64,000 nt of DNA from Ruditapes philippinarum (GCF_026571515.1 NW_026865571.1:1-64000); one strand, 5' to 3'. Positions 3,820-57,000 are shown, counted from the stretch's first letter. Translations and numbers: made by a program. The notes: a model not told the origin generated them from the letters alone.

Positions 3820-6800
3820 ATATGACCTAGCTGCTGTTTTCTGGCAGCAGTATGGGATCAAATTTACCATAGACATTACCAAATTTGAACCAGAACAAGT
3901 CAGGTGAAGGTTAAAAGATTTTTATCACATGCTTTTCGGTGGTTTATAGAAATATATCAGTGTTATAAAACTGGTAATTTCACTGTTTGAAACAGTGAAA
4001 TTACCACTTTGATAATTTCACTGTTTTGAATTTAAGGTAGTACACCCCTAATGGGCACTATAAGGAATTGTAAATTTGACAACATAGGACAGTTATATGC
4101 CTTAAATGCCACCTGTATGCAAAATTTAAACAAAATTTACCGTGTGGTTTATGAGTTATAGACATTTTTATGAACTAAAACTTTGCCATTAGAAGGGACT
4201 TTTTCAGAAATGAGGAAACTCTAAATAATCTATAATATCATCATTATGAAAAATGTTTTCCTTTTGCTCATTGTTAAGAAATAAATAATGACATTTAGGT
4301 AACAAATTAAACAAGCAAAATGATTGTTTTTAAACGAAATGTTTTTAATATGTATAAAAATGTAACCCTACCCCACCCACTTTTAACACTAATTTGACCA
4401 TTTCCCTATGTAAAAAGCCTTATTTAAAATATCTCTAAAATTTTCCAAAATGAGGGGCTATTTTCAAAGTTTGCCTAAATTTTCTTTAATGTATATTGGT
4501 TGGTCTTGCAAAATATAAAATACTTTTACCGTTTAGTTTTTATTTTATTAAACTTTGAAAATATCTGGTATCATATTTGCTATTAAATTTGGCATTATTT
4601 AGTAAATAAATACCTACAATAATTATATAATTAAAATAAAACACTTTTTTCTTCCATAGGGGGTCTGAGAGATTAATAAAAAATGTTAAAAAGAAAAAAA
4701 AGAAAGAAAAAAAATTGCCCCTTCTGGGGTTTGAACCCACGCCCCCTCAGTTTCAATACACTTTACAGTGATTTTAGCCTATTTGAAATACTCTTCAAAG
4801 TGGAGACAGTGATTAGGGGTGTACTACCTTAAGCCCCTTACGTTGTTTTCAGTGAAATACCAGCGTGCACAATACTGGGTACCAACTTAATACGTGACGT
4901 CGTAAAATGACGTCACGTTGTATTATTATTTGGCGCGCTTTTCATTCCGTAATGTCTTTTTTAAAACGTTTCTTTGCATGTAATAAAAAGAAAATTTGTT
5001 TAGTTTAGTGTAAGATTGAAATATATTTCACCTTGTGAACACCAAAAGTTCATATTTCACTCGTGGCTGCGCCACTCGTGAAATATTCCTTTTGTTGCTC
5101 ACTCGGTGAAATATATTCCGATCTTACACTGAACTAAACAAATATCCTCTATGACTTCATATGAGCTGGCGCACTTATATCATTTCTGCCTTTTATGCCA
5201 TTATATTTACAAACAACATCTTCTAAAAAAATCTGCTCATTTCTTCAATGTAGAATTTAAATATGTGATCAAGTAAAAATGGCCTTATACCTATGGTTTC
5301 AATAAATGATTAAAGGTGAATATACACCAAATGTTCAAATTTAATAACCAATAGTGAGTACAATATTGACTTCATTAAAATAAGTGAGCTTTTGTAAGCT
5401 GTTACAAGAAATATATGACTTCAAACAAACAAAAATTATCAATACAAACTTGTAAAAGAAGGTAGACAACTCCTCTGGCAAACAATATTTTACTGCTGGA
5501 CTTCAGCTCAATAACTTTAGTTAGATCATCTATTGCTTTGGTATAGTGCTGTAATGCTATGTATGCCTGAAATATATTGTATCATTTAATCATCTAGACG
5601 TAGAAGAATGGGTGTGACTGCATTTCTCTGTGACAATTATTCTACATTATTATACATTGAATCTTATGGTCATTTGTCTCTTACTGCTGATTCAGAAATC
5701 ATTTGTGATAAGTAGTCTGCCACTTGACAGAGATGCTTTTTTCTGTATTTTACAACTGAATAAAGGCTGTTTCCCCTAGCCCAAAACAGGTATATTTTCC
5801 CATAAAAATGCTTATATTTTCCACTGAAATGCCCTGTGCACTTCTTCACCAGAACCATGACTTAACAGCAGCTGACTTATATCAGGTTATTGATAAATTT
5901 AATTGACTGAAAGACAGAAAGCTGTCCCTACAGATACATGTAGCCTCTATTATATAGCATGCATGTTAAATTGAATTAAAACTGAAAATTTTAAAAAAAA
6001 ATGTGGGTAAATTCCATTCTCAGTTATTGAAATGTATTTTGATTCCAGATTTTCCCACTTTTCTGATATATTGTGCTATATTTTTTCCCTATTAGAAAGC
6101 CACAGGTTGTTTTGAAAATTAAAACAAGAGGGCCATGATGGCCCTGAGGTCGCTCACCTGTATATAGGCCCCCCAACCCCCACCCCCCCCAACGTTGCAG
6201 AGCCAATTTAACCCAAGGGCTTTTATTTGCACAAACTTGGTAGACACCCATAAGAAGACGTTTCATGCTAAACATTTAAGCTCTAGCTCATTGGGCTTTT
6301 TAAAAGAAGATTTTTTTAAAGTTTTTACTATACACATATAGTTAAAAACAATGACACCCCTTGGGCCGGGCCAGTTTTGACCCCAGGGCTTTTATTTGAA
6401 CAAACTTTGTAGACACTTACTAGAAGATGTTTCATGCTTAATATCTAAACTCTAGCTATTTGGGTTTTTTCAAAGAAGATTTAAAGTTTTTGCTAAACAC
6501 ATATAAAGAAAATCAATGACCCCCGGGGCGGGGCCAATTTTGACCCCTGGGCTTGTATTTGAACAAACTTGGTAGACACCTATTAGAACATGTTTGATGC
6601 TCAATATCTTGGCCATAGCTCTTTGAGTTCTTTAAAAGAAGATATTTTAAGTTTTTACTATATGCATATAGGGAAAATCAATGACCCCCGGGGCGGGGCC
6701 AATTTTCACCCCAGGGCTTTTATTTGAACAAACTTGGTAGACACCCATTAGAACATGTTTCATGCTAAATATCTTAGCTCTAGCTCTTTGGGTTCTTTAA

Positions 6801-26273: not shown

Positions 26274-26322
26274 CCGCGTAATAATGTATTTTTTAATTAA
26301 ACATGTGAACATTGTATAAAAT

Positions 26323-38300: not shown

Positions 38301-41300
38301 TAAAGAATAAAATGGTGGTTTCCTAACTTGATCCATGTGGGTTAGGTTAGAGCGTTAATATTTCACAATAGTTGTCACAGTGAACTCTGAAAACGTTAAC
38401 ATGTCAAATGAATGACTTAGACTTGTTTCAATCATATAATATCCACAATATATGTTATTGTAACTTCAAGTCACATGCTACTCGGTGATTCAGTTGGCGT
38501 CTAAATTTCGTTCAAAATATTAAGAGGATATTTTTTTATTTAAAAAAAAAAATAACCTTTTTATTTAATCTCATTATCAAAGAAAATGGTTACGAACCCC
38601 CTTGCTTGCTACGCAACTGCAATTGTACAGCGCGCAGTAATAAAATTATTGTCTTGTTTTGCGCGCGATATTTAGCGCTACATTGTGACGTCACGTAAAC
38701 AACTCTTTAAACGTCTGTACAGCGTTAATGACTGAATTAAAGATATTGGTGTTCGGATTTATTTTCTTAGTTAGACCATTTTCTATCATTCTAGATAGTT
38801 TTCAAAACAAAATTCAACAAAAAGTTGTTTTGTATTTTCAGATTTTGCAAACAGAATGTCAAAAGAAGTCCGTTAAAATAAATATGAGTTTTGACTCCGC
38901 CTACTTTCATATTTATATTTCATATTTATTTTTAAAAAATATGAAATATATTTGACTGATATAGCACCATATTTCATGGGTAAAATTAAATAATAAGAGG
39001 ATAATTTTTCGTTTGAGTTAAATATGGAATATATTTTCACGAAACATGATAAAATGCCACATATTTTCACGAGCCGGGACGGCGAGTGAAAATATGTGGC
39101 ATTTTATCATGTTGAGTGAAAATATATACCATATTTCACGAAAAACGAAAAAATAACCTTTTTATTTAATCTCATTATCAAAGAAAATGGTTACGAACCC
39201 CCTTGCTTGCTACGCAACTGCAATTGTACAGCGCGCAGTAATAAAATTATTGTCTTGTTTTGCGCGCGATATTTAGCGCTACATTGTGACGTCACGTAAA
39301 CAACTCTTTAAACGTCTGTACAGCGTTAATGACTGAATTAAAGATATTGGTGTTCGGATTTATTTTCTTAGTTAGACCATTTTCTATCATTCTAGATAGT
39401 TTTCAAAACAAAATTCAACAAAAAGTTGTTTTGTATTTTCAGATTTTGCAAACAGAATGTCAAAAGAAGTCCGTTAAAATAAATATGAGTTTTGACTCCG
39501 CCTACTTTCATATTTATATTTCATATTTATTTTTAAAAAATATGAAATATATTTGACTGATATAGCACCATATTTCATGGGTAAAATTAAATAAATAGAT
39601 ATATTTACGCTTCGAACTCAATATACATGTACAGTGTATATAGAATTTAAACAGAAATTCATGCTGGGACTTTAAAAATGTCGTTTTTACGTGATTTGAG
39701 TACATAAGATCATTTTGATATTTGAGCCGCGTCATGACAAAACCAACCTAATGGGTTTGCGACCAGCATGAATCCAGACCAGCCTGCGCATCCGCGCAGT
39801 CTGGTCAGGATCCATGCTGTTCGCTATCAGTTTCTCTACTTGTAAATTACAAGTTGTAATAGGGTTTATAAATAATCAGTTTTTTTGTAATAGGGTTTGT
39901 AAGCGAACAGCATGGATCCTGATCAGACTGCGTGGATGCGCAGACTGGTCTTGATCCATGCTGGTCGCAAACGCACTATGTTGGTTTTGTCGTGACGCGG
40001 CTCATTTGTGTCTTTAATTTGCCTGAGTATCCCTTTAAACAACATCAACTTTGTTGAACTATATCACAACCGGATGATATACTTAAAGTATAATATTGAG
40101 ACATTTGCTTTTCATTTAAGTTCATGGTGATGATATGCACACGGTTTTTGCAGACATCTATAGTTTCAATGACGTCACAGGATAGAGGAAAAGGAGCATC
40201 CACCGGATATCTATTTACTGCTCCAAAAGAAGCTTCCGGTATATTTCGTTTAAGATAAATACACACAATAGTTATTCATGAAGTTAACATTTGTTATATT
40301 TTCGAAAGAGAACTTTTTATAAATGTTTACGAAAAATATTAAAATGATACTTTTCCGTTTAAGTGAAATACGAAATTATTTTTTCTCGAGACTTTATAAG
40401 CGTTCATATATTTTAAAGTTTAAGGATTTAGAAAAAATGTTGGGCAAAAATCCAATGTTATCTAGAGAACTTAGCTCTTTATAAAAGATTCATTTAGTTA
40501 CTAACAATAATAAATGTTTTGAATTTTCCTCAGTAAATCTTAAACAGAATCGTCCAGAATAATAATAAATTTGCAAAAGATATATTTATTTACCAACATT
40601 TAAATTGTTTTTATTTTTTCTAAAGAAATGTGTAACAAAGTCGTCTAAGTTCATTGGGCAATGGACAAGTAAGATTAAACGGTCATTTATTCTTTGACCA
40701 TTTGTTTCAAACTGAGAACTTCGTTTTCTGTAAATAAAAAGAGATAATGACCAATTTGTACAAAAACCGTAAAGAATTTAAAAATTATAAGATTTATTTA
40801 TATTTTTAATTCAGATTTCGACGTCAAAACAATTTGCAATAAATTGTCATTGGACTCATCTGTTAACAACACTGATGAGGCAAACATCAGTGGGAGTGCG
40901 AGCACACATTCTGGTGTAAAACGAGATAGAAATACGGACAAAGTTTATAATTTCGATCAAGAGTTTGAATTAGATGATCCTGTAGATCGTGTTATAAAAT
41001 TTAAAAAGAGTAGGGCGGATGCTAAAAAACAAAGACTGAGACTTCAAAGACACCGCAGCAACAGAAAACCAACTCCGAAAACTGAAAATTCTATTTCTAC
41101 AACAGAGTATAGTGCAACGACAGATATAGCGAAGAATGTGTTCAATGACAATTTTCCCAGCCTTGACAGAAAACCAACTTCGAAATATAATAGTTCATTT
41201 CCGACATTAAGTGACCATAATGCAAAAACTTCAACACCGTTAAAAGCGTATGGTTCGGTTCGCAAGATAGCCGAAGAAATAGGCCCAGTAATGATGCGGT

Positions 41301-41365
41301 CATTTACTAGATACTCAGATATTGAGCTTGTAAGACTGGTACACCAAAAAGCTTCCGGCAAATAG
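26323..41365 (+). CDS. Peripherin-2/RDS/ROM1-like tetraspanin, paralog 1 (~488 aa)
   Basis: Exons 26323-26885, 27618-27852, 40121-40238, 40815-41365 (phases 2,0,1; open). Four TM segments; MQISFECCG..YKDWF..W; DVPFSCC..RPC..HFNYD..LY..GC; RFLQTS..GYLF are RDS-subfamily signatures. Confidence 0.88.
28445..29520. mobile_element. IS3EU-like non-autonomous element (1076 bp)
   Basis: TIR TACGATGGCATAAAAGTGACATTTG / CAAATGTCACTTTTATGCCACCGTT extended by ~21-bp subterminal tandem repeats; perfect 6-bp TSD CAAAAT (28439-28444, 29521-29526); absent from the sister copy at ~43575. Confidence 0.8.
30278..37501 (+). mobile_element. AcademX DNA transposon, full length (7224 bp)
   Basis: Termini TAGTTAGAGTC...GACTCTAACTA; 3-bp TSD ATA (30275-30277, 37502-37504); ~170-bp block-conserved TIRs; empty site visible in the sister host copy (~42990-43000); encodes a DDE+XPG+Cys-rich protein. 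Confidence 0.92.
31628..36870 (+). pseudogene. Academ transposase (N-terminal Cys/His motifs, DDE, XPG/FEN1-like nuclease, C-terminal Cys cluster); two frameshifts in exon 1
   Basis: Exons 31628-33390 and 34032-36870 (phase-2 GT-AG intron). Motifs IDWEKCILCQ, AKWHKLC, SAVDNIDHN, IAADQPLF, GGLHIE, DHAHEQNNK, LIDGAA, WDRY, HEEADTRL, DTDV, HAFTGCD, CSC..C..RCKC..C..LCKC. Frameshifts at ~32033 and ~32430. Confidence 0.9.
38521..39595 (+). mobile_element. Head-to-tail dimer of a Crypton-like hairpin element (601-bp period)
   Basis: 38548-38991 is identical to 39149-39592; the junction carries TAAGAGGATA plus a ~150-bp palindrome (39003-39153); the first unit's palindrome is deleted; a related fragment lies at ~46420-46600. 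Confidence 0.7.
39723..40004. mobile_element. Palindromic MITE TGAGCCGCG...CGCGGCTCA
   Basis: ~100-bp TIRs; further copies at 41572-41688 (half), 53791-54027 and a fragment at ~63950-64000. Confidence 0.85.
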
Positions 41366-41571
41366 AAAACTGTCTACGAGCAAAGGAATATACATTAATA
41401 AAAATGATTTTTGTATCAGAAAATGTATTTATTCTTTCTTGCTTATTACGAAAGTAAGGTCATTTTTTCACACTTAATCCCTGTCCTATTGCCATTCAAA
41501 GAGGGAAACCATTCTCTGTAATTGTGGACGCCTGAACCTCTCCTTTTCATGTCGAGCAATGATATGTAAAT

Positions 41572-41688
41572 GTCACGACAAAACCAACATAATGGATTTG
41601 CGACCAGCATGGATCCAGACCAGCCTGCGCATCCGCGCATTCTGATCAGGATCCATGCTGTTCGCTATCAGTTTCTCTACTTGTAGTA
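41572..41688. mobile_element. Half copy of the TGAGCC palindromic MITE
   Basis: GTCACGACAAAACCAAC..GCGACCAGCATGGATCCAGACCAGCCTGCGCATCCGCGCA matches the left arm of 39723-40004. Confidence 0.8.
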
Positions 41689-42425
41689 ACCGTTAATCAA
41701 CCGAAATCACTGTAATGACGTAATAAAATTAGAATATTGAGTTATTTTATTATCAACATTAATTGTACGCATTTGCTAGCAGTGATGTATTTAAGTCATT
41801 TAATATAATTAATAAAACAGTCAAAATTGTTGATACATTCCTACCATATGATACAAATCACTTTATTGAAGCTACCTCAAATTATGAAAGAAAATAAAAT
41901 GTGTCGATGCAAAGCCCAAACCTGAGCAGGATGTAGCAAAAAAGCTTTGATTGTAAGGTTAAACAGGTCCACGGTTTATACAGAACGTATTTTTAAACTT
42001 TCCTGTGACTTAATTTGTTTATCAACAAAGCGCTTTGTAAATAAGTATATATTCTTCGACATAGAACAATTATTTCGGTATATGTATTTATATAGATATT
42101 CTGACAATATTTATTTTCTGTAGAATATATGCGTGAAATTGAGCTAAATCTCTAAATTTTGCATCTTTTGTAGGGCATTTTGAAAAAAAACTGCTAGCTT
42201 CTAAAAGTATTAAATTCATGTAAAACTTGTCAGGGGAGTTTAACTTTGTTCATTGTTCATTGTTTCATTTCTAACTGGGCTGAAATTGACATTAGTCTGT
42301 AATTGAAAATGGCAGATTTCAGTTAAAACTAGGTAAATTTGTCAGAAATCTTTCCCCAAATTTAAAACTTGCCATTCATATACACATTTTATTATTAAAG
42401 ATTAAGGTCTAATAATTTGGTTCAC

Positions 42426-43627
42426 TGTTACACCTCACTTTGGGGTCCAACGCACTTTGGGGTACAATTTCGACCCCAAAGTGCGTTAAACAGGTACATA
42501 TGTATTTTTTAACATCAGACAAACGACCGCACTTTGGGGTCATAAAAAATTAATTTTCATTATGTTTTAGATAATATATTATAGTCAAAGCCAATAGTAA
42601 ACAAAAATCAAGGTTCATGCATTAAATAGACGCAAAACATGTGCCCTGAATTATAGTAGAATCCATAGGGATTTAAATGATCTTGATCAGTAAGTGAAGA
42701 ACTTTCATCAAATAAAGAATTTGTATCAATTAATGAGCTCAAAATGTATTTTTTCTCAAACTTTCCATTTATTTTAAAAGATTATCTCCATTGTTTTTAG
42801 ATTATTGCATCATTTTCCCGTTTTTTATTTATACAGATAGTCTTAGCATAGACAAAGGTAAAAAATGTGCCTGATTATATGTTGAAAGAGTAATTTATTT
42901 AGCTTATCTAAATGTGACATTATAAGGAACTGGACTAGGTGTAGATGCGGCTTCAAGTACTAGTCCGTACATACAGGCTACAGTACTAGAAATATCATAA
43001 ACTATTTAAGTAGTCACACATTAAGAGGGTAGCTTCATAATAATGTAAAGTTCTCAGTGGGGGTCTACAGGGGGTAGTGGGGTATCGATCCCCCAAGGGT
43101 TAAAATAACATTTTAAAGGCCCATTAAGCTTTTATTTGTTTTTCTTAAAAGCTTTTTTATTTTGATGTTCTTCTATAATATCCAAAATTACTCACTGGCC
43201 AATTATCTAAACCATCTTTTTCATCTGTTTGTTTTGGCAATGATGAGTACAGTTATAGTGAATTAGTATGAAGTCAAATATTTCATTGTTTTAACTACTT
43301 TTATGACAAATAATTTCACATTGTAACAAGTATCTTACGTTTCTCTGATCGAGAAACTTACGTTTCTCTGATCGAGAAACTTGATATTTCACCAGAACAT
43401 TGCAATAGAGTATATTGATAGTTCTCTGGAAAAAATATATATGAACTGCATTTTATTTCATTCCCATCATATATAAAATGGGGCTCAATATAGCACTAAA
43501 GGTTATCAAGTAAATGACTGACAGAACGGGATATTTTTCGCAGCATCTTTTAATTTTAGGAATACATCAGTACTTTGTTATATAAACACAATTTTTAGAT
43601 ATTTCAAGTGGTAAAATTAATGAAACT
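42426..43627 (-). mobile_element. Second, inverted and truncated copy of the TGT...ACA element, lacking both nested insertions
   Basis: Reverse complement of ~38050-37505 joined to 30277-29527 joined to 28444-28390. Confidence 0.85.
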
Positions 43628-44001
43628 GGCTATAATAATGGCTATAAATGTGAATAACACGGGCTGTTTTTTTTTCAAAAAAAGGCGGACAAATCCTGTT
43701 GGTATGTAATCTTGAAAAATCATAGTATAGGTACAAAAGTAATACCTTTAGAAGCGGAATTTATTTTGGAAAAAATGATATATACTACAAGTTATTTGGA
43801 GTGTATGTAAGACCGTAAGTTATGATTAAACTGTGTTATTTAGTACCAGGAATACATGTTAACATATTAGACAGTGCTAATTGTGAGATATTCTACATGT
43901 ATATGTATATAGATTTATAATCTAACAACTTTTTCCTTGAATCGCTTTGGTGTATTTCAGCAATAACAAATTGAAAATGCATTTGTATTCAAGATACTTA
44001 A

Positions 44002-44520
44002 AGGAGACACAGCCAAAATTTTTATTTCTTCGTTTTGATTTTTTCATAGATTATTCAGTAAATATCCTCAAAATAAATGCACTATAGGTAGTCACAAGAA
44101 CAAAACTTTTCTCCTTTAAAAGAAGAAAATGGTGGTTTCTTAACTTGACCCACGTGGTTCAGGCTAGATTGTTAAGATTTTACAATAGTTGTCACAGTGA
44201 ACTCGTTAAAACTCGAGAAACGTTAAAGAACATATCAAATAAATGACTTAGACTTGTTTCAATCATACAATTGCCACACTTTCTGCTTTTGTAACTTCCA
44301 GGGTTTGTTCAAGTCAAATGGCTTGTTTTTAAACTCCTCGGTGATTTTGTCGGCGTCTATATTTCGTTCGATATATCTAGATATATTTACGCTTCAAACC
44401 TAAACTATATAGAATTTATACAGAAATTCATGCTGGAACTTAAAAAAAATGTCATTTTAGTGTGATTTGAGTACATTAAATCATTTTAATATTTTTGTCA
44501 TTTATTTGCCCGAGTATCCT
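44002..44520 (+). mobile_element. TTAA-target MITE, uninterrupted sister of 38184-40034
   Basis: TTAA|AGGAGACAC...GAGTATCCT; colinear with 38184-38520 + 39596-39722 + 40005-40034. Confidence 0.8.
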
Positions 44521-44635
44521 TATAAAAAGAGACCAGTCCCCGTTTTTTTTAGGAAAAGTTGGCAACGTCTTTATCAGATCCGCTCATCTAATTATGGCTG
44601 ACGTCGGATTTTACGCGAAATATCTCGATGTAATT

Positions 44636-44669
44636 TGACGTCATATCCGCAATCGATGAAACAAAATGG
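44636..44669 (+). promoter_or_regulatory. Proximal promoter module of tetraspanin 2
   Basis: TGACGTCA-TATCCG-n9-AAACAAAATGG, matching 26239-26273. Confidence 0.5.
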
Positions 44670-44740
44670 ATCTTTTAAGAAAAAATGTTAACCAACATGA
44701 TATTTAACAACAAAGGGCTTTGCTTTTGAGATGGATTGTC

Positions 44741-47700
44741 ATGGCAGGACCAGTTATTAAATTTACGGAACGAAAGCGTGAAAAGTTTGCAAAATTTGTT
44801 GGATTTACGCAGTGGGTTTGCATTTTACCATCTTTTATGTGTCTGGTGTTAGCATTATATGTACAGTTAGTGATAGAAGCTAAAATAAATTTCATTGAAG
44901 ACTACAACGGCACGATACTTCCTGGATTCCTTCTATTTTGTGGATTTTTCGGATTGTTTTCGCACATTTTATGTGGTAAAGTAGCTTATACCAACAGGTT
45001 ACCTGAAAAAAGGGAGAAATGGATGAAATTTTTGCTTCCTGCGCTAATTGTAACATTCGTCATATTCTTAGCTGAATTAATTTCTGGAGTAATGTGTTTT
45101 GCGCATATTCAAAATTTGGAGGAATCATTTCAATCCGGCATTAAGGCTGCGATGTCTGCTTACAAGGATGATGCGACAACTAAGGAGGAACTTGACATAT
45201 TGCAGTTCGAGTATGAATGTTGTGGTAGCAAGGATTATATGGATTGGTTTTCTGTTGCCTGGATTCATCCCGACTTCAGGAGTACAAAGTCACGAACAAG
45301 GTATACATGTATTTTTATGAAAACAGTGCATTTGTTTCCAAATACCGTAGGTGTATGTGTAGGCAAGATTTTAGTTTATGTAATATTCGACTTAAAAGTA
45401 GCCTTATATTGAATTATAAAATATCTATCTATCGATCGATCGATCGATCTCTATCGATCGATCTATAAAATATAAAATGACAAATGATCTTAATTGGCAA
45501 ACCCTTGAACAGCGTCGAAACATCATTGCTTTAACCTACTTGTATAAAATCCAAAACAACATTGTTTTTGTTGACCACCAACACCTTACTCAAACTACTC
45601 GAGGACACAATATCATCAAAATTCTTTCTTTCCTAGGAGATACGTCTTTGGAATAGCCTTCCTGTCTAGCCCCAGTTTAAACATCTTTACTGAGAGGCTT
45701 GACCCATTCTATGAATTCTAAATCGCACACTATGTCTTTTAAATTAATAGTCTTGTAGAACTTTTATTTTTTTAACTTTTTAAATTTGCATATCAATAAT
45801 TTCTTTTATTAACAAATCAGAATTTATTGTTAAGCAGTATGATGAATATGTAGATGTACATGCAACAAAATATCGACATTAATTGTAACAATATAGAAAA
45901 AATATCGAGATGAATCAGTACTGTAAACAAACAGTCGCCAATAAAATATATAAATAAAATAGTTTACATAAATATATTATAATTAACTATAGAAAATGAT
46001 AATAATTATGCTGAGCGCTATTGGCTGAAACAAAGTTTTTGCCCATAAAGACAGTGTGTTTTATTAAGATTACATGATCTTTACTCATTATTCAGCGACT
46101 TAAACAAGACGGTACTTGACAGCGTCCCATTTAGCTGTTGTAATCCACAAACTTTGCGCCCGTGCATTCAACATCACGTGCACGACAATAACCTACACTT
46201 CAACTACGACTATCGAAAGGAAACAACACTGTATAGCAACGGATGTACGGAAAAACTGATGTCGTTTTACAAACATTCAGTTCTGATGGTAGCTGGTGGA
46301 CTGGTTTTTATCCTGTCAAGTATAGAGGTAGGTACCAAACGTTTATCCTGTCAAGTATAGAGGTAGGTACCAAACATTTTTCTTATATATACTAACAGGA
46401 TATTTTTAATAACAAATATAATATATAATTGACTGATATAGCACCATATTTCAGAGGCAACATTAAATAATAAGAGTTAAATATATGGAATTTTATCATG
46501 TGAAGTGGTAATGATATCCATATTAAAAAAAAAGAAACACACACCTTTTTATTTAATTTTGCTACGCAGTTGCAATTGTACAGCGCGCAGCAATACATTA
46601 ATTAAAATTAGGTGCGGGACACAGTTAGAATCCAATACACAATTCATTACAGTCATCTTGAACTTTCTTTTAAAAACATAACCAGACAATTTCCGATGGT
46701 GAAATGCATTGCTGAAGCTACTGTCTGCAACAGAGAAACATCTGAGAAAGAAGTTCAAAAGAGAAATAGAGGATATTCAAGTTTTTTCTATAAATGCAAT
46801 ATTGCCGCTGGATAACAATTGTATATTAATGTTTATTTCACGTGAATAATTTGTATAAAGAACTGCATGTTCGTCTTTTTTTAAACATGAATTGCATGTG
46901 ACTTTTCTTTACAGTTTGAGCTGATTATATGTATGCGGTTACTTCAAACGGCAGTGGCGTCATCGCTAGAGTCCTATGATCAAGAAGGTCCATCATATGG
47001 GTATCTGTTCGGTAATCCGCAGAAAACAGGTAAATAAAAAAATAGAATCTACTATCCTTTTTTAAATTCTTAATTCGACAAACCTATTTGAGCTAAACTT
47101 TGATTAGAACTGAAATTGCAAGTTGGAGTTTGAGACGATATTTGTTTTGAGTGAATATATTATATACACATGTATCTCACAGAGAAGTGGGGAAAATTGT
47201 AACATTGTGAAAACAATAAGCGCGGGAAACATAAACTTGTTAATAAGATGACGTCAGACGATCAACGTTGCGGGAACAAAAATACAATTTTAGTGCTTAT
47301 ATATGAATCATTCTTGCATATTAGACAGAGCCGCGTTACCGCGGTAAACAGTTACCCTCGAGCTAGATATTCTGGTCTGTACCAACAGCCCCGGTATAAG
47401 ATATTTAACAAATAATACATGGCCTTAAGGGCAATATGCAAGTTTACGGACTGATTGGTCAGACTGAGGAAGGTATATGACCCGAAGCGCAGCTGAGGGA
47501 CATATACCTTCCGAGGTCTGTCCAACACACAGGCGCTAGTCACATAATCAAATATTTTACATAATCGGTCTATATATGTATATAAAGATATATCTTTATA
47601 TACATATATAGACCGATTATGTAAAATATTTGATTATGTGACTAGCGCCTGTGGTCCAACATGTCCGTAAACTTGCATTTAGCCCGAAAGGCCATGTTTT

Positions 47701-50700
47701 ATTGTCCCCCGCCTTTTCGAAGAAAAAAGGGGGATATAGTAATAGGCTCCGTCCGTCCGTCACACTTTCGTGTCCGGTCAATAACTTTGTCATTCATCAA
47801 AGGAATCTGAAATAACTTGGCACAAATGTTTGTTATAATAAGACGATGTGTCATGCGCATCAACCAGACCCCTTCCTCCAGGGTCAAGGTCGCACTTGCT
47901 CATTCAACGTCAACATTGTCCATTTGATGGTATACTTTGTGTCCGGTCCATAAATTTTTCATGGATCAAAGGATTTTGTAAATACTTGCCACAAATAGTC
48001 ACTATAATAAGACAATGTGTCGTGCGCAACACCTGCATCCCTACCTCCAAGTTCAAGGTCACACTTAGAGGTCAAAAGTTAACATAGTCTGTTTTAGGGT
48101 ATATTTATTGTCTGATCTAGAACTTCTTCGGTTTTTGAAATAACTAGGCACAAATAGTCACAATAAATAAGACAATATGTCAGGTACAACACCTGCACCC
48201 CTACCTCCAAGGTCAGGGTCACACTTAGAGGTCAAAGGTTAACAGTCTGTTATATGGTATATTTTGTGTTCAGTCCATAACCTTTTCATAGATCAAGGGA
48301 TTTTAAAAATACTTTGCACAAATAATCACATTAATAAGATGATATGTCAGGCGCAAAACATGGGTCCCTACCTCAAAGGTCACACTTAGAGGTCAAAGAT
48401 TGACATAGTCTGTTATAGGGTATATTTTTATGTCCGATCTATAACTTCTTCATAGTTCAAGGGATTTTGAAAATACTTGGCACAAATAGTAATAATAATA
48501 AGACGATATGTCATGCACAACACATGCACCCCTACCTCCAAGGTCAAGGTCACACTTAGAGGTCAAAGGTTAACATGATAGATTTTTAAATTCTGTGTTT
48601 CATTTTACTAGTTTTCTTTAATAAATTTATTGTTGCACTTGCAGATCTAGCATTGAAATAATTTTGGACTGAAAGTCCTGAGATTCATACCTCAATCTTT
48701 TGAAATAGCACAATTTTATGCTTCATATAAAACTTCCCCGAGGCGGGGGACGTTGGTAACTCTGTTACAAATTCTTATTTGTTATATTATACCGAATCTA
48801 AATCATTTTATCCCTTTTGTTGCTGACATTTTAACTATAATTTGCTTTCAAATAATAATTTATTTGTTAAGTGTGTGAAATATCTCAAACCCTAGTCGGA
48901 TTTATTATTATTATTTTCAAGCGATACAGAAAAAAAATCATGCTCTTCTTTTGTTATTCATTTTTTGTTAATCAAATTGAACAGGCAAAAAAACCCGAAA
49001 TTTAAGATTTTAAATGACGTCATCCAGGCAATATAAGAATTATGGACCGCCCCGGTCTTAATGCGGTTTATGTACCGGGTGGTGGCATACTAAATATAGA
49101 AAGACGTATGCAAATGAAATGTAATATATAGAGGATATTGAATGAGTGTAAGTTCAATACTGAATTTATTGCACGAGTTGAATAAAATTATATTATGCGA
49201 GCCTCTGGCGAGCATACTATTATTTCATTCCACGAGTGCAATAAATTCAGTAATGAACTTACACGAATTTAATATTCTACTTATCACACACCCAAAATAA
49301 AGATCGTTTAAAGTGAAATAAGAGTCATTTTTCATTGACGCGCCTATAGTATAACGCTAACATTTAGCGCGTCTTTACACTATGTTTGCATAACGCTAAT
49401 GACGTCACGTCAAAATATATGCTCTGCCGTGCAATACCCTATTTACGGAGTCGCAAAATCGGCACGGATGTTTGATAAATAAGATTTATCACGTACACGT
49501 GCCGCTTTTGCGAATCCGTAAAAATGGTATTGCACGGCCGTGCATATATTTTGACGTTATGTCATTTGCGTTATACAAACCTACGTAATTGTTAGTTACA
49601 TTATAAGCGCGTCAATGATAATACGATTTTTTTCGCTTTCAACGGTAAATTTATTGTGGGTATATGATAAATAGATAGAGAATATTCAAGTTTTTCTATA
49701 AATACAGTATTTATTTTCATCGAGTTGTATGAAAATAAATATTTCATGAGTGGCGGTAGCCACGAGTGAAATATTATAATTTTCATACTACAAGATGAAA
49801 ATAAATCCTTGAAAACTTGATTTTTCTGTTTATTATATACATAGAGGATATTTGTTAAGTTCAGTGTAAGGTCGGAATATATTTCACCGAGTGAGCACCA
49901 AAAGGTATATTGAGCGAAATGTGAACTTTTGGTGTTCACGAGGTGAAATATATTTCGATCTTACACTAAACTAAACAAATTTTCTTTTTATTACATGCAA
50001 TCAAACGTTAAAAAGGACATTTTTACCTATTAATACACTTGTTACTATATATAGTAACAAATTGCCTATGATTTCAACTGATTATGAGTGTCACGTGACC
50101 TATTATGAGTTTGCGGCCCGGGGCCGAGAACTAGTTATCAGCCCGCAGAACATGTGCACGTGCACAAACTGAAACAATGACGTCATATTTTACGTCATGA
50201 AACAGTTAACTGTAAAAGTGAAAGTAGACTGACAGCACATCGTATTTAGTACAAACACATTTTTGTTACTGTTGAAATTTGAAGAAATAATACGACAAAT
50301 TCAATCCGAAAAAAAAAGAAAATAAAACTTGCTTCTTTGAACACACAAACAGTAAACATCTCCGTACAGAACACAAGAATTTCAACCAAAGAACTTCAAA
50401 GTAGATTTCTATTTGTTGTTGTTGTTTTTTTTTCTTTTTTAAAAATGCTACTATTAGATCTACCAAGTGTCAGAGTAGGGCCGGAAGGTGATAATCGGCC
50501 CTGAATGAATAATGGCCCTCGGGCTAAAGCCCTCGGGTCCATTATTCATTTTGCGGGCCGATTATCACCTTCCTGCCCTCTCCTGCCGTGTATTAACCTC
50601 TTATTAATACACTTGTTACTATATATAGTAACAAAATCGCCTATGATTTCAACTGATTATGAGTGTCACGTGACCTATTATGAGTTTGCGGCCCGGGGCC

Positions 50701-51053
50701 GAGAACTAGTTATCAGCCCGCAGAACATGTGCACGTGCACAAACTGAAACACTGACGTCATATTTTACGTCATCAAACAGTTAACTGTAAAAGTGAAAGT
50801 AGGTTGTCAGCACGAATCGCTTTATTTCTATTATGAGAGCTTAAGCGTATTTAGTACAAACACAATTTTGTTACTATTGAAAATTGAAGAAATAATACGA
50901 CAAATTCATTCCGAAAAAAATGAAAATAAAACTTGCTTCTTGATTCTACTGCTTTGAACACACAAACAGTAGATTCTAAACGTCTCTGTACAGAACAGTA
51001 GAAGAGTAGACAAGAATTTCAACGAAAGAACTTCAAAGTATTTGTTGTTGTTG

Positions 51054-51084
<31 letters not shown>

Positions 51085-53784
51085 TGCTACTTTTATATAG
51101 ATCTACCAAGTGTATTAAAGACATTAATACACGTCAGAGTAGGGCCGGAAGGTGATAATCGGCCCTGAATGAATAATGGCCCTCGGGCTAAAGCCCTCGG
51201 GTCCATTATTCATTTTGCGGGCCGATTATCACCCTCCGGCCCTCTCCTGCCGTGTATTAACCTCTTAATAATAAATGAATAGCGCGCCAAATAATTATAC
51301 AACGTGACGTCATTTACGACGTCACGTTATTAAGTTGGTTTCCAGTACTGTGTACGCTGGTATTTCACTGAAACAACGTGAGGGGCTTAAATTCAAAACA
51401 AATTGATAATTTCACTGTTTCAAACAGTGAAATTATCAGTTTTAATTCACTGATATATTTCTATAAACCATCGAAAAGCATGTAATAAATTTTTCTCTTC
51501 TTTTTTTTAACATCTCATTTTTGTATATTGGCTGAATATTTAGCAGAAAGTAGTCCGGCAAGACACCAGTGAAAATACGGCAAATGAAAATACGCATTTT
51601 ATTTCATCAACATTTCTCAATATTTCATTGATATAAAATAAATAGAGGATTTCTGGTGTTCACGAATGAAATATTTTAATCTTACATGCAAAACAAATAA
51701 ATTATGCTATTTAAGTGATTTTAAGTATTTTTTTACTGATTTTGTCGCGTAACATCGCGCATTCTCCTTTGTGGCGTCATCACATCATGACGTCACATCA
51801 TCAATTTTGAAATATAGTTCTGTTAAACTTTCTTTATTTCATGCTTTCCAGTGTTTTATTGTAATATATCAGATGATTATATTCTGAAAAACCACTAGTG
51901 AAATTTATAAAATATAATTTTCACTGTAGCCGGACTATATCTGAATGCGGATGAAAAGAAAATCATAACTAAATGGAATAACAGGCAAAAATAAATGCCG
52001 TCGTACGTAAATTTTGCTTCTTTAGGAAAAGTAAGTCGAACTCACCATAAATCATGTTAAAAATGTAACAAAATTAGAGAAATTTAACAGAACTGTATTT
52101 CAAAATTGATGACGTGACGTCATGATATGATGACGTCACAAAAGAGAATGCGCGACGTTACGCGGTAAAATCAGTAAAAAAAATACTTAAAATCACTTAA
52201 AAAACATTAAATAAATAGAAAATTTATTTGTTTTACATATAAGATTGAAATATATTTCATTCGTGAGCACCAGCTATTATATTTTCACTCGTGGCTACGC
52301 CACTCGTGAAAATATTGCATCTGGTGTTCACTCAGTGAAATTATATTTCAATCTTACATGCAAAACAAACAAATATCCTCTATATATTTTTTTTTTACAT
52401 TTTTAACATGATGTATGATGACATGACTTTCTTTTCCTAAAGAAGCAAAATTTACGTAATGCGGCTTCTTTTTCTGCCTGTTATTCCATTTAGTTATGAT
52501 TTTCTTTTCATCCGCATTCAGATATAGTCCGGCTACAGTGAAAATTATATTTTATAAATTTCACTAGTGGTTTATCAGAATATAATCATCTGATATATGA
52601 CAGTAAAACACTGGAAAGCATTAAATAAAAAAATATATTCGTGTAGGTTCATTTCTGCATTTATTGAACGAGTTGAATAAAAATATATTGTTCGAGCCTT
52701 TGACTTACACTAATTAAACATCCTCTATATAAGCAACAACACATTAATCAATTAATATGCAAACTTACTTTATTTAATTACGTCATAAAAATAATGTTAA
52801 TACTATTAATACATTTATTATTTTTATCATGTTTGTGAAACTTTAGGCGCAGATTCAACTGGAGGAACGACGCTGCTTGATACGACAGGGGAGACCACTA
52901 CAGCGGATATCACGTTTAGTATGGAGGACGGAGAGTTTGACGAAGAACGTTACGTTAATTTGGATCCAGTTTACGAAAACGTTGGGCAGTTCGAAGTTGG
53001 AGCTGACGATGAACATATCTATAACGAAGGAGCTGTTGAAGGTTATCTTGCCGGAAAGTTTGCTCGATCAAAGGAAAGGTTTGAGCATCTTCAGGAAGGC
53101 GGATATGAGGCTCTACATCCAGCATACATGGCTCCAGGCATCCCTGTTGCCCCGCCGCCGCCACCGCTTCCTAATGTTAATTTCAACAGATCACCAACAA
53201 ATCTTCATGAAGTCCGGTCTAACTATGGAAGTTATTTGGCCATGGATTTTTCGAATTCGTCATGGGCAAAATATCTCCCCGCGACAGAGAAAGTACCAAA
53301 AAGATATAGAAAACACAACAAAGTTCGCGTAAAAAGGCATCCGTTTCCGAGCCCTAAACGTATGTCAAGCAGTCCAAAAGATACATCCGTTATAAATATG
53401 CGCCAAAGTAAATCACCATCTATATCTGGATCAGGTACTAGACAAAGGCATACAGAACCTGAACGCAGACGACTTTTAGATAGCAGTCCGCCTGATTTGC
53501 TATATAGATCTCCAAATAGATATCCAAATAGAGAGGAACATTTGCAAGAGCCACGACGTTCCCTTTTTGAACCTCATTGTTCATATAAACACAGTGCCAC
53601 TCAAATCTCTCCTAACAAGATCCTACCTTACGACCGGAATTCCAACATTTTCCCGAGCATGTTTAATTCCGTATATGGAAAACGAAAGTCTCCGCAAAAG
53701 AAGTCTCCAGATCGGCGCATTTCTCCTCAGAAAACAAGCTTCAAGTCCGGCGTTTCTTATAAATGTAATCATGCATATGATTAG
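44741..53784 (+). CDS. Peripherin-2/RDS/ROM1-like tetraspanin, paralog 2 (~614 aa, long tail)
   Basis: Exons 44741-45300, 46096-46327, 46915-47029, 52847-53784 (phases 2,0,1, same as paralog 1). LQFEYECCG..YMDWFSVAWI; SVPFSCCNPQTLRPCIQ; MRLLQTA..GYLF. Confidence 0.88.
46307..46375 (+). repeat. 35-bp tandem duplication spanning the exon-2 splice donor
   Basis: TTTATCCTGTCAAGTATAGAGGTAGGTACCAAAC at 46307-46340 and 46342-46375. Confidence 0.95.
47528..47653. mobile_element. 126-bp perfectly palindromic MITE with 8-bp TSD (P- or hAT-type)
   Basis: 63-bp arms with no spacer and no mismatch; CACAGG...CCTGTG termini; GTCCAACA at 47520-47527 and 47654-47661. Confidence 0.92.
47699..48780 (+). mobile_element. 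Non-autonomous Helentron (HINE-like) with ~160-180-bp tandem units
   Basis: Subterminal IR GTCCCCCGCC / GGCGGGGGAC; (CCGT)n at ~47748; GGTCACACTTAGAGGTCAAA recurs at ~48057, 48217, 48378, 48548; 3' hairpin GTAAC-TCT-GTTAC; T-run insertion site. Confidence 0.82.
50028..51265 (-). mobile_element. Head-to-tail dimer of a Crypton-like hairpin element nested in another hairpin element
   Basis: Units 50028-50601 and 50602-51265 both end GTATTAACCTCT and are diverged by indels; they split the 49841-51490 element. Confidence 0.7.
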
Positions 53785-53790
53785 AGTATA

Positions 53791-54027
53791 TGAACCGTGT
53801 CATGACAAAACCAACATAATGGGTTTGCGACCAGCATGGATCCAGACCAGCCTGCGCATCCGCGCAGTTTGATCAGGATCCATGCTTTTCGCTTACAAAC
53901 CCTATAACAAGTAGAGAAACTGATAGCGAACAGCATTGATCCTGATCAGACTGCTCGGATGCGCAGGCTGGTCTGGATCCATGCTGGTCGCAAACCCATT
54001 ATGTTGGTTTTGTCGTGACACGGCTCA
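53791..54027. mobile_element. Palindromic TGAGCC-family MITE 6 bp after the tetraspanin-2 stop codon
   Basis: TGAACCGTGTCATGACAAAACC...GGTTTTGTCGTGACACGGCTCA. Confidence 0.85.
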
Positions 54028-57000
54028 ATTATATTAAAGTGATATATTTTATGCCTTATATAAAAAATAATATTTATAGTGTCCAGAATATGACATTTTG
54101 TAGTACAAATATTGATAAAAATGCAAGAGTATTTTGAGTGGAAAGCGTCATTTGTATGAATATATCCGACTTTATGATCTGCTACATATATTTTACTGTG
54201 TTCTAACACGTGTATTTAGGACATTCTAACGTGCATGCTTACGGTCGGAATAAGACATAATAATGGGACATGTCAACGCAAAAATGCATTGCACGTAAAT
54301 TAAATTGTTCAAATCTGTCATAGTATATTTGATATCTTTTTACAAAGGCCAAGGAAGGATTTAAAAACTAGCACAGAAAATTTTCTTAAACTTTGCACGA
54401 CTTAAGAGAATCAGTTTTTAAACTACCCTGGAAAGTGTTGTTTTTTTCTCTCTGTCTCTCTCTCATGTATAGATTACTCAATGCTACATGACAAGCAACA
54501 CCTTATTTGATTTTACATGTATATACATGTATGTGTTTCTTAGTTTACTCCCCACCATGGGGCAAAATTTCGACAAATTTTATTCTATGGTTGCTTATGT
54601 CAAATGTTAGAAATATTCTTGGAGAAATGCCCCCTTTTGAAGAAAAATGCAGTATGTTTAGTCATTGAAGCATTGCAACATATATTTCCTAATTGAATAG
54701 TTTTAAACTTAGCATAGAAATTGAAAATGAAGATTGAAATAAAATGAAATACCGGTTTGCTTGATTTTAAAAGTTATCTGCTCCTGAATGTGACCAAAGT
54801 AAAGAAACTCACTTTTATCGGCAGATAGCTCAAAGAATCCCTATTTTTCCGAAACAATTTGTTTTAATCATGACTCTCTTTAATCATGCTTAGTTTGAGA
54901 AAAAAAATAATTGCTAGTTTAAAGTTTGTAAAAATATTATAGTAACATTTCCTATACGGGGCATTTTACCTTAGAAATTATTGGCTTAACAAATTCTGTG
55001 TATAAAGTTGGAAATCAAACAGTAGTGTCTTTACTATTTGTTTCCGTCTTGTTTTTTGAAAAATAAAACATGTATGGTCCTTCTTTTTTTTTAATTGCAA
55101 TGCAAAATTTCTTTCAGCTCACATACATTATGAGTTAAACATTCGCTGACGGAAAAGAACACGCACAAATCTGAAATGTTTCACAAAGCAAAAATCCGTA
55201 CATGTTTCTATTTCTTTACCTTATTGCAAAATATTTGCAAAACAAAATTCTTACATCTTATCAATACAAATAAAACTAATTATGCATGCATTACCGTATT
55301 TTCATACAAGTGTGGTCCAAAGGTCGTCTGCGTGGAGTACACATATCTAAATTTTATCTATTGCGAACAAGTATCATAGATAATTTCTAAAATTGCATGC
55401 AGATGGCTGGTCGTATGATATACTCTAAAGCACCGGATAGGACGAATATAAATCCTTCACAGAAGTTGATTGCTGTGTTTTTTCGTGATTCGGCGCGCAA
55501 ATGTTGCATTAGACAGCTTTACGTTTATGGCTCATAAACTACATGGAGTGCCAGAAATTAGATTTTATAAGAAATTATCAAGTAATAAGGATGCAATTAA
55601 AATGTCAATCTCTTTAAAAGGTATCGTATTATCGCAAACTGTGATAATTTTACATTAGAAATTAATGTCTGGGGCAAATTGGATTGAAACCGTATACGTG
55701 CGGAACACACGAATAGCAGATATAACGGGTGTTCCGTGAAATGTGAAACCAATTAAAGACCCGTATATGCCCAGTATCTTTCTCTTCCCTAGTAAAGATA
55801 CAAACAATCTGGAACTATTTACTGCGAAACAATGAGAAATCAAACGTCAAATTAACAGGAATGACTGTGTAAAATGTAATTTCAACCTAGTTTGTGGTGA
55901 ATTATCTCCGTAACTTTCATCTTCGTCACACATGGCCTTGCTGATAAACCTCCTACATAAATATATAGGTTTTTTGCTTGTAGATTTATGTATTGAATTA
56001 ATGGGAATGTCACGTTCTTTATCTCATTACTGGTCAATTCAATACGGTGCATTTCTATTATATTCAAACTCAGCCAAATGTTTCATTAGGAACATTATTA
56101 TATTTAGCCATAAATGTATCTATGTCTCTAGTTACATGCATCATTTAACCAGAAAGAATAACCCCGGCCCAAAATCATTTTGAACTAAAAAATATTTATT
56201 TCCAGTACTCATAGTTCTCATACCAATTTATTTTCTCTAAACTTGTATCTTTGAGCACGAATAAACCAAAATGTCAAACTAGATATGAATGCAGGCGTTT
56301 TCAACTTGTCCTGTTATCAATATTAGCATCTTCATAGTTTTTTCGCAATTCCAAAGATAGACAGTAACTTGCTAAAGAGACAGGCCAGGCTGCTCACCCG
56401 TGCATTCTGAGTGCAAGGCTCTTTACTATTGGTAGCTATATTTTTGTATCGAAATTAATTCATCTTCAAATGTTCTAAATTAAAAGCAGGACAAATGTAT
56501 TTCACAAATCAAGCAGGTTAAAAATTAAAAACGTTTCAATTATGCATTAGTGTCAGATCTTTACCGATTCCCAACAGTCCTCGGGACCGTTCAATGATGT
56601 GATGAAATGTCGCCCCAGGAGGAAGCATAAAGCGCGGGTTCTGTTTGTATAAGAGTGCCCGGATGGGAATTTAACGCCGGGTCTGAGATGCCTCTATGTC
56701 AGAAATGTTAGCATGCCAGGAATTATAACGGTATGTATAGCGCGATTGTACATTGGTACAGAATCACATCTTTAAATTTGACAATAAAAAGTCTTTTATA
56801 AATAAATTTAATGAAACCAGAGACTCTATGTCTCTGATCAAACTAGCAAAATTAGAAATTTTGAAGCATCATAATGAATTCAATTATTTCGATCATAGTG
56901 TATGCATGCTTTGGCAGAATTAATTAGTAAGTAAAGATAAAAGTAGTATTGAAAAAAACAAAACATATTAACTTTTAAATACTACTTTTATCTTAGTACA

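Follow-up and report, generated by a model that had tools for sequence, protein, structure and literature searches.

The 64,000 nucleotides (nt) of Ruditapes philippinarum DNA analyzed here (hereafter, the window; source assembly of 1.4 Gb in 15,874 contigs) harbor several families of gene-less transposable elements with a long imperfect hairpin, in which tandem GA/GA mismatches recur and lie on a single strand of nearly every hairpin. The counts given below support these mismatches as a conserved, strand-polar feature common to families unrelated in sequence, and confirm the observation as genuine, well beyond what chance would produce. We read the elements as non-autonomous clam transposons whose mobility depends on a site-specific recombinase that works on a folded strand, most likely a tyrosine recombinase of the Crypton type, and would give this reading a probability of about 0.5. 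A tetraspanin gene (exons at 26320-26886 and 44708-45409) hosts the hairpin elements in its introns, and both orientations are present inside one of them.

A Strand-Polar GA/GA Motif in Unrelated Hairpins

A sequence-only reading of the window had proposed that the mismatches of several little-related hairpins are not random, being symmetric GA/GA on the strand that reads TAGAGG, together with loops of the form GNA. Palindromes of at least 25 pairs were collected from the window and a further 58 loci of this genome (246 kb altogether) and folded with DNA parameters, giving 127 hairpins; all the statistics refer to these 246 kb of clam genome and 11 families, and hairpins were clustered by sequence because most of the 127 are copies of two families. 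The 127 hairpins together show 225 two-by-two internal loops, 194 of which are either GA/GA (105) or TC/TC (89), the latter being GA/GA viewed from the opposite strand, against a GA/GA rate of 1.3% expected under random decay of perfect palindromes with the composition of the window. The motif is borne by 11 sequence-unrelated clusters, and it accounts for 21 of the 26 two-by-two loops of the cluster representatives, the remaining ones being mostly one-step variants such as GA/AA; the proposed non-randomness is thus borne out. In the same DNA, GA/GA was absent from all nine two-by-two loops of seven further palindrome families, and none of 28 palindromes from 80 metagenome Helentron loci (569 kb) had it, these being loci where element ends are undefinable from single copies. 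We also considered whether GA/GA arose from a palindromic unit repeated in tandem with GA as its spacer, and rejected this origin, as the sequences flanking GA are not self-complementary in most families.

The orientation of the motif is almost invariable. Forty-five hairpins show only GA, 44 only TC and a single one is mixed (89/90 uniform), and the GA strand is the one reading TAGAGG in the five families (5/5) with a mapped TA(A)GAGG end, as had been claimed. The sole exception seen is one degenerate family-2-like hairpin at 52640-52745, whose inner part is inverted with respect to the outer part and the TAGAGG terminus, placing GA on the strand opposite to TAGAGG; it resembles a flip/flop inversion of the hairpin apex. 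All the GA/GA positions listed beforehand (39015/39140, 39041/39114, 39071/39084, 49144/49265, 49175/49234 and 49199/49210) were found where indicated, with pair sums constant within each hairpin, as were the loops GGA, TCT, GCA, GGTA, TTTA and, on the minus strand, GCA and GTA; every other coordinate of that reading was likewise correct.

Sequence context and position of the motif are also constrained. GA is flanked as Y-GA-R in 34 of 36 arms, and as CGAG in 26 of these 36. The Y-GA-R context favors sheared tandem G·A pairs in DNA. Each family has one GA/GA on a short, G+C-rich mini-stem, 2-5 pairs under the pair that closes the loop, and in many families a second one lies 21-34 pairs further down the stem. 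On the GA strand, a G...A loop (GNA or GNNA) occurs in 7 of 11 families; the GNA loops anticipated from the sequence therefore stand as a tendency for G...A, and fail as a general rule.

Element Layout

The palindrome beside a TAGAGG terminus had been correctly recognized, although it is only part of the unit: the elements span 350-600 bp, and a 3'-terminal inverted repeat pairs with the stretch following the hairpin. Copies sharing 94-98% identity delimit elements of ~600 bp in family 1 (at least 1968 candidate places in the genome) and ~350 bp in family 2 (at least 504), hence more than bare hairpins. The five TAGAGG families follow one layout, formed by the terminus TA(A)GAGG plus ATATT (TTAAT in the family cl9), the hairpin (100-160 nt, 45-80 pairs), a stretch of 11-13 bases, and a 3'-terminal partner, so that the very 3' end of the element is the reverse complement of the 11-13-base stretch. 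The 3' ends of the five families are AAATTAAATAA, GGGTGTGTGATAA, GCATGTAATAA, GATATAAAATAAA and AAGTGTATTAA, ending in ATAA or TTAA. The two outer ends bear no inverted-repeat relation to one another, and the hairpin is present at one end only. Where one copy directly follows another, the hairpin stem is prolonged over the junction by the 3' end (6 of 30 family 1 loci, with the junction AAATAA^TAAGAGG).

Insertion Without Duplication Into Dyad-Symmetric Targets

No target-site duplication was found in ~60 copies or in two reconstructed empty sites. In one locus (L013), a family 1 element splits a cl2 hairpin arm exactly at GGTGAAATAT^ATTTCG, and the empty form of a cl9 dimer is preserved in public contigs as a joint of 50027 to 51266 with a 2-base ambiguity only. 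The stretch 47300-52800 is too repetitive for circles or single-copy alleles to be seen in the public contigs matching it, and these gave two empty forms and the family boundaries. A miniature inverted-repeat element mobilized by a DDE transposase was rejected, as no fixed-length duplication exists in those copies and empty sites.

Flanks sufficient for the analysis of targets were available for two families, family 1 and family 2. The 5' flank is AATAN in family 1 and AATAT(A) in family 2, with 84-100% conservation per position. In both families, target information peaks at -5 to -2 and then at +7 to +11 past the 3' end (ATATT or TTAT(T)). These two blocks are reverse complements, and the targets are dyad-symmetric, AATAW^N6-WTATT. 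Complementarity of the 5-base arms peaks only at a spacer of 6 (2.98 of 5 vs. 1.71 ± 0.16, z = 8.1; z = 5.7 for each family alone). The joined ends of the elements read (A/G)ATAA^TA(A)GAGG-ATATT, with the same succession of arm, spacer and arm as the target, and the two junction products combine the left arm of the target with the spacer of the element, and the left arm of the element with the spacer of the target. In the folded GA strand of the joined ends the spacer pairs poorly, with GG bulged in family 2 and a wobble G in cl4, and the mirror copy of the spacer on the opposite strand reads TAGAAT instead of TAGAGG. On the other side of the element, the 3' ends AATAA, GATAA, AATAA(A), ATAAA and ATTAA echo the 5' flanks AATAN and AATAT(A), resulting in a short direct repeat at the borders, of a type reported for Cryptons (PMC3212892). 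The core site of tyrosine recombinases comprises two inverted arms and a spacer of 6-8 bases, with exchange taking place at the arm border (PMC3212892); our data support that element ends and targets possess this plan, situated at the foot of the hairpin. This location of the arm-spacer-arm plan gives concrete form to the analogy with integron attC sites.

Rolling-Circle Elements as an Alternative

Among the alternatives, mobilization by an HUH nuclease, an enzyme type that works on single-stranded DNA and recognizes hairpins, deserves the closest attention, even if we regard this origin as unlikely. The elements could form an atypical Helitron2/Helentron lineage, to be read from the other strand, whose terminus carries a 5' inverted repeat and whose 3' inverted repeat precedes a stem-loop plus a short, CCTCTA-ending tail; or they could belong to an IS200/IS605-like system cutting 3' of AATAN beside the hairpin. 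Asymmetric terminal inverted repeats of 11-13 bases with an adjoining hairpin are in fact the Helitron2/Helentron plan (PMC3627910; PMC4067079; HELIANO preprint), and the corresponding layout is found on the TC strand of four families, the repeat of cl9 lying after the hairpin. The absence of target duplications fits equally well, as do the head-to-tail tandems (6 of 30 family 1 copies) and the families placed side by side, both of which are reported for Helitrons. In the Helentron orientation, family 2 has T on both sides in 81% and 100% of the copies, while both sides are mixed in family 1. The genome also has at least 94 matches to Helitron_like_N, with open frames of up to 2643 amino acids (aa), and a Helentron product 93% identical to a Ruditapes philippinarum protein.

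Several features argue in the opposite direction. In the Helentron orientation, the strand to be transferred bears TC/TC and A·C, and not the fold-favoring G·A and G·T; the hairpin measures 100-160 nt, compared with 5-20 bp in described elements, where it lies within ~20-60 bp of the 3' end; and a canonical Helentron non-autonomous element (HINE) in the same window (47704-48772) has a 5-bp stem devoid of the G·A motif. A dyad target with a 6-base spacer is no known feature of HUH systems. No RepHel fragment was detected by tblastn in the window or the 58 hairpin loci, nor any G·A hairpin in 100 kb of DNA around Rep domains or in the 569 kb of metagenome Helentron loci.

A comparison of 30 Rep loci with the hairpin elements found no common non-coding DNA, the Rep loci stopping short of the element ends. 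Comparing hairpin places with Rep and recombinase places by contig revealed no shared neighborhood among the matches listed, with 40 candidates scored per search, too few to be informative. Bacterial and archaeal genome contigs were also scanned for a contaminating clam Helentron, with zero matches.

The HINE at 47704-48772 itself shows a 5' subterminal repeat of 11 bases (GTCCCCCGCCT), a (GTCC)n tract, ~4.5 tandem repeats of ~190 bp, and a 3' part with the repeat AGGCGGGGGAC and the stem-loop GTAAC-TCT-GTTAC. Its empty form is found in public contigs, where 47703 is joined to 48773 between T and T.

Folding and Selection for Structure

Three observations indicate that the GA strand pairs with itself. 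Between cl2 subfamilies, seven pairs are changed on both sides with pairing kept, and the GA/GA sites are retained; G·T wobbles outnumber A·C mismatches on the GA strand of the representatives by 23 to 4 (A·C being G·T on the other strand); and the G...A loops have the same polarity as G·A and G·T. Selection on the hairpin as a structure is supported by these data. By standard DNA parameters, which do not model sheared G·A pairs, energies of -40 to -65 kcal/mol are predicted for the folds of both strands, the two differing by only 0-5 kcal/mol. This prediction lends no support to G·A pairs causing one strand alone to fold; with folds of nearly equal predicted energy on the two strands, G·A would more likely serve as a mark of strand identity than as a source of stability. 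With RNA parameters, the GA strand is favored by 1-21 kcal/mol in 12 of 13 hairpins.

The similar predicted energy of both strands, by which stability selects neither, would be compatible with a palindrome that works as a duplex and involves no folded strand, C-GA-G being a directly oriented protein-binding motif or a symmetry-breaker that stabilizes long palindromes. The near-invariance of CGAG (26/36 arms) fits a sequence-specific reader, and the arm-spacer-arm core is present as duplex at any joined end. Nonetheless, a duplex role leaves unaccounted stems that covary with pairing kept, as well as the 23 to 4 excess of G·T over A·C on the G·A strand, relevant only if that strand self-pairs; the G...A loops that 7 of 11 families show on that strand and a Y-GA-R context known to favor sheared tandem pairs in DNA point the same way, and we hold this explanation for rather improbable.

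A function of the hairpin as RNA, be it a transcript structure of a reverse-transcribing tyrosine-recombinase element of the DIRS/Ngaro type or a small-RNA precursor, would profit from the RNA parameters just mentioned and from the frequency of G·U wobbles and tandem G·A in RNA, and yet it appears very unlikely given that the hairpins reach no family threshold in Rfam (only weak, generic microRNA-like matches), that the elements occur in both orientations within one host intron, and that exact ends, 3'-terminal repeat pairing beside the hairpin and a dyad DNA target suit DNA recombination better than reverse transcription.

Proposed Mechanism

Returning to a recombinase acting on a folded strand, the elements might move as follows. 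Where the two ends of an element meet, as in a circle or tandem, the left arm (A/G)ATAA, the spacer TA(A)GAGG and the right arm ATATT would constitute a core site at the foot of the long hairpin on the GA strand. The 3'-terminal 11-13 bases would pair with the stretch after the hairpin and the right arm with the far hairpin arm, leaving a poorly paired spacer. The recombinase would cut between left arm and spacer, and the cut point would be joined to a genomic target that follows this plan as well, AATAW^N6-WTATT. Being restricted to the GA strand, tandem sheared G·A pairs (C-GA-G in both arms), G·T wobbles and G...A loops would mark the substrate strand, either as single-stranded DNA or as a cruciform arm. 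Integrons and CTX phage carry out one-strand exchange with unlike spacers. An exchange of this kind is proposed here because the spacers are likewise dissimilar and duplication is absent; it would tolerate unlike target spacers and produce no duplication.

We infer from these features the enzyme, the single-stranded state of its substrate and the exchange of one strand. A core at the foot of an imperfect hairpin with marks on one strand is in keeping with an attC-like site. The general form of the proposal, according to which animal Crypton-like transposons and their gene-less derivatives recombine via a folded single strand, G·A, G·T and G...A loops telling the enzyme which strand to use, in what would be a eukaryotic counterpart of attC, is advanced more tentatively and at somewhat less than even odds. 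Candidate enzymes are abundant, since the clam genome has at least 733 candidate matches to Phage_integrase, many of them with open frames of 330-420 aa. Among the 98 places scored of these 733, which cover part of the candidates only, none lies on the contigs of the hairpin loci, and Pfam searches on nine open reading frames of the window detected neither recombinase nor Rep.

A number of points weigh against this mechanism. The putative link with a recombinase is drawn from site architecture, and the conserved arms of ~5 bases are short for a recombinase. The spacer of the element has 7 bases in families 1 and 2, and that of the target 6; cl2 targets (n = 8) show a weak left arm. To this the near-equal fold predicted for both strands by standard DNA parameters must be added. 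Furthermore, descriptions of animal Cryptons in the literature include no terminal repeats or hairpins (PMC3212892; PMC13465315), and the asymmetric inverted-repeat layout is the hallmark of Helitron2/Helentron (PMC3627910; PMC4067079).

Hairpin Elements and Other Features of the Window

Family 1 is represented by a complete copy of ~600 bp on the plus strand (38994..39594), with the terminus TAAGAGG at 38994 and boundaries established from 29 other copies of 97-98% identity; its hairpin (39003-39153) has three GA/GA and the loop GGA, and is followed by the inner inverted repeat (39159-39169); the 3'-terminal partner AAATTAAATAA occupies 39584-39594. Another plus-strand copy precedes it head to tail (38521..38993), its hairpin collapsed to a short remnant. 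A family 2 copy of ~350 bp occupies 49128..49478 (plus strand), and includes the terminus (A)TAGAGG, a hairpin with three GA/GA and the loop TCT (49135-49275), an inner repeat starting with TTATCACAC at 49281, and a 3' partner ending in GATAA (49466-49478). The 3' part of family 2 follows on the minus strand as an inverted partial copy without hairpin (49484..49680), and both copies together make up the 100-nt inverted repeat 49381-49480/49484-49583.

From 49.1 to 52.4 kb the elements form a train that is partly nested, with cl9 copies inside a cl2 element and the latter inside cl4. The 5' part of cl4 (49675..49840, plus strand) starts with the terminus ATAGAGA and contains a GA/GA hairpin with the loop GGTA (49700-49805); later insertions separate it from its 3' end GATATAAAATAAA (51630-51642), and a public contig joins 49842 to 51538. 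The cl2 element (49841..51488, plus strand) has the terminus ATAGAGG, a hairpin at 49842-49990 whose apex was lost in this copy, the inner repeat TTATTACATGC (49988-49998) and the 3' partner GCATGTAATAA (51478-51488). Nested inside it, the cl9 dimer (50030..51267) consists of two head-to-tail copies on the minus strand (50030-50603 and 50604-51267), minus also being the GA strand; their hairpins (50477-50579 and 51113-51270) have GA/GA beside the loop TTTA, and the copies run from the terminus TAAGAGG, with TTAAT after it, to the 3' end ...GTGTATTAA. A cl2-type terminus (ATAGAGGAT) fused to a right hairpin arm, with left arm and apex deleted, follows at 51642..51705 on the plus strand. Two further hairpins with terminus lie on the minus strand, namely cl2b (52210..52383; TC/TC on plus being GA/GA on minus, with the loop GTA on minus) and cl2a (4984..5152; GA/GA and the loop GCA on minus). 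A 71-nt plus-strand hairpin with two GA/GA and the loop GCA (47455..47525; cluster 32) lacks a TAGAGG terminus and is located inside an inverted-repeat element at 47411-47703.

The apex missing from the cl2 copy is seen in public contigs ending at 49911, as CACGAGTGGC-GCA-GCCACGAGTG. Collapsed hairpins also occur in the copies at 38521-38993 and 51642-51705, which suggests that long hairpins are often deleted after insertion. The palindrome TGACGTCA, similar to a cyclic-AMP response element (CRE/ATF-like), is present, often twice, in internal parts of several unrelated hairpin-element families (39280-39300, 49395-49410, 50175-50200, 51295-51325, 51785-51800 and 52110-52130), and could be a shared regulatory or accessory site.

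Directly after the hairpin 47455-47525 there is a perfect AT-rich palindrome of 126 bp (47528-47653). Both are enclosed by the inverted repeat 47411-47458/47656-47703 of a different repeated element (47411-47703), which served as insertion site of the HINE. A separate family of near-perfect palindromes of 280-350 bp, G+C-rich inside and without GA/GA, is found at 39723-40004, at 53753-54067 and at L012:233-582, and served as control; it also occurs beside one Helentron Rep locus (L084). Besides these repeats, an open frame of 611 aa at 13328-15160 contains DDE_1 and HTH_psq domains (pogo/Tigger-type transposase), and two frames at 22852-24238 match carboxylesterase, probably as exons of one gene. 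In the locus L027, positions 321-936 consist of alternating A, T, G and C homopolymer blocks of 4-25, and look like an assembly or read artifact.

Significance

To our knowledge, how Cryptons move has so far been described only as a model; animal Cryptons lack a defined recombination site, and the use of a folded single strand is not known from any eukaryotic recombinase. Our literature searches found no link between Cryptons, or any eukaryotic transposon, and tandem G·A hairpins. The layout common to five families, the insertion without duplication and the dyad target matching the joined ends are newly described here. In this sense, the elements offer a defined site, with a conserved core of 11-12 bases, a matching target consensus and a structural code open to mutation at single bases. 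Should the proposed mechanism prove true, the principle of integrons and CTX phage would extend to animals, the spread of thousands of gene-less copies without target duplications would be explained, and a compact, strand-specific recombination module could be obtained. Even if the enzyme were a rolling-circle nuclease, a periodic code of sheared G·A in DNA hairpins of 150 nt would represent a new kind of recognition signal.

Comparison With Known Systems

Known mobile systems share different parts of this plan. The bacterial IS200/IS605 family comes close to the clam elements in acting on a specific strand, in having a hairpin immediately within the left end that is cut, in lacking a duplication and in using a short 5'-side target sequence that resembles the 3' end of the element itself; nonetheless, its hairpins are present at both ends, measure ~20 nt and form no long palindrome, whereas the clam elements have theirs at one end only. 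We know of no dyad target in this family and of no eukaryotic counterpart of its transposase TnpA. Helitron2/Helentron and HINE have asymmetric terminal inverted repeats of 8-15 bases, one terminal and one by a stem-loop near the other end, and Helitron2/Helentron also coincide in the absence of duplication, the tandem arrays and the AT-rich sites. The clam stem-loop is ten times longer, however, with periodic G·A pairs and a dyad target, and its hairpin favors folding on the strand opposite to that transferred by Helitrons; the HINE at 47704-48772 shows none of these traits.

Regarding Cryptons, the absence of target duplication is shared, together with a direct repeat of 4-5 bases in 5' flank and 3' end; non-autonomous derivatives outnumber autonomous ones, and tyrosine recombinase genes are abundant in the clam genome. 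The animal Cryptons described so far differ by having neither terminal repeats nor hairpins (PMC3212892; none are mentioned in PMC13465315), and strand-specific structure is unreported for Cryptons.

The remaining comparison is with integron attC/IntI and CTX phage attP(+)/XerCD. The clam elements differ from both in residing in a eukaryote, in being gene-less with an enzyme that is inferred, and in bearing tandem sheared G·A and G·T as marks, instead of extrahelical bases alone; compared with attC, their targets are thousands of loose AATAW-N6-WTATT sites rather than one attI. Common to all of them are an imperfect one-strand hairpin of ~60-150 nt, a core of two arms and a poorly paired spacer at its foot, non-Watson-Crick features as the putative means of choosing the strand, a one-strand exchange (proposed for the clam elements) that tolerates unlike spacers, and mobile units that accumulate side by side.

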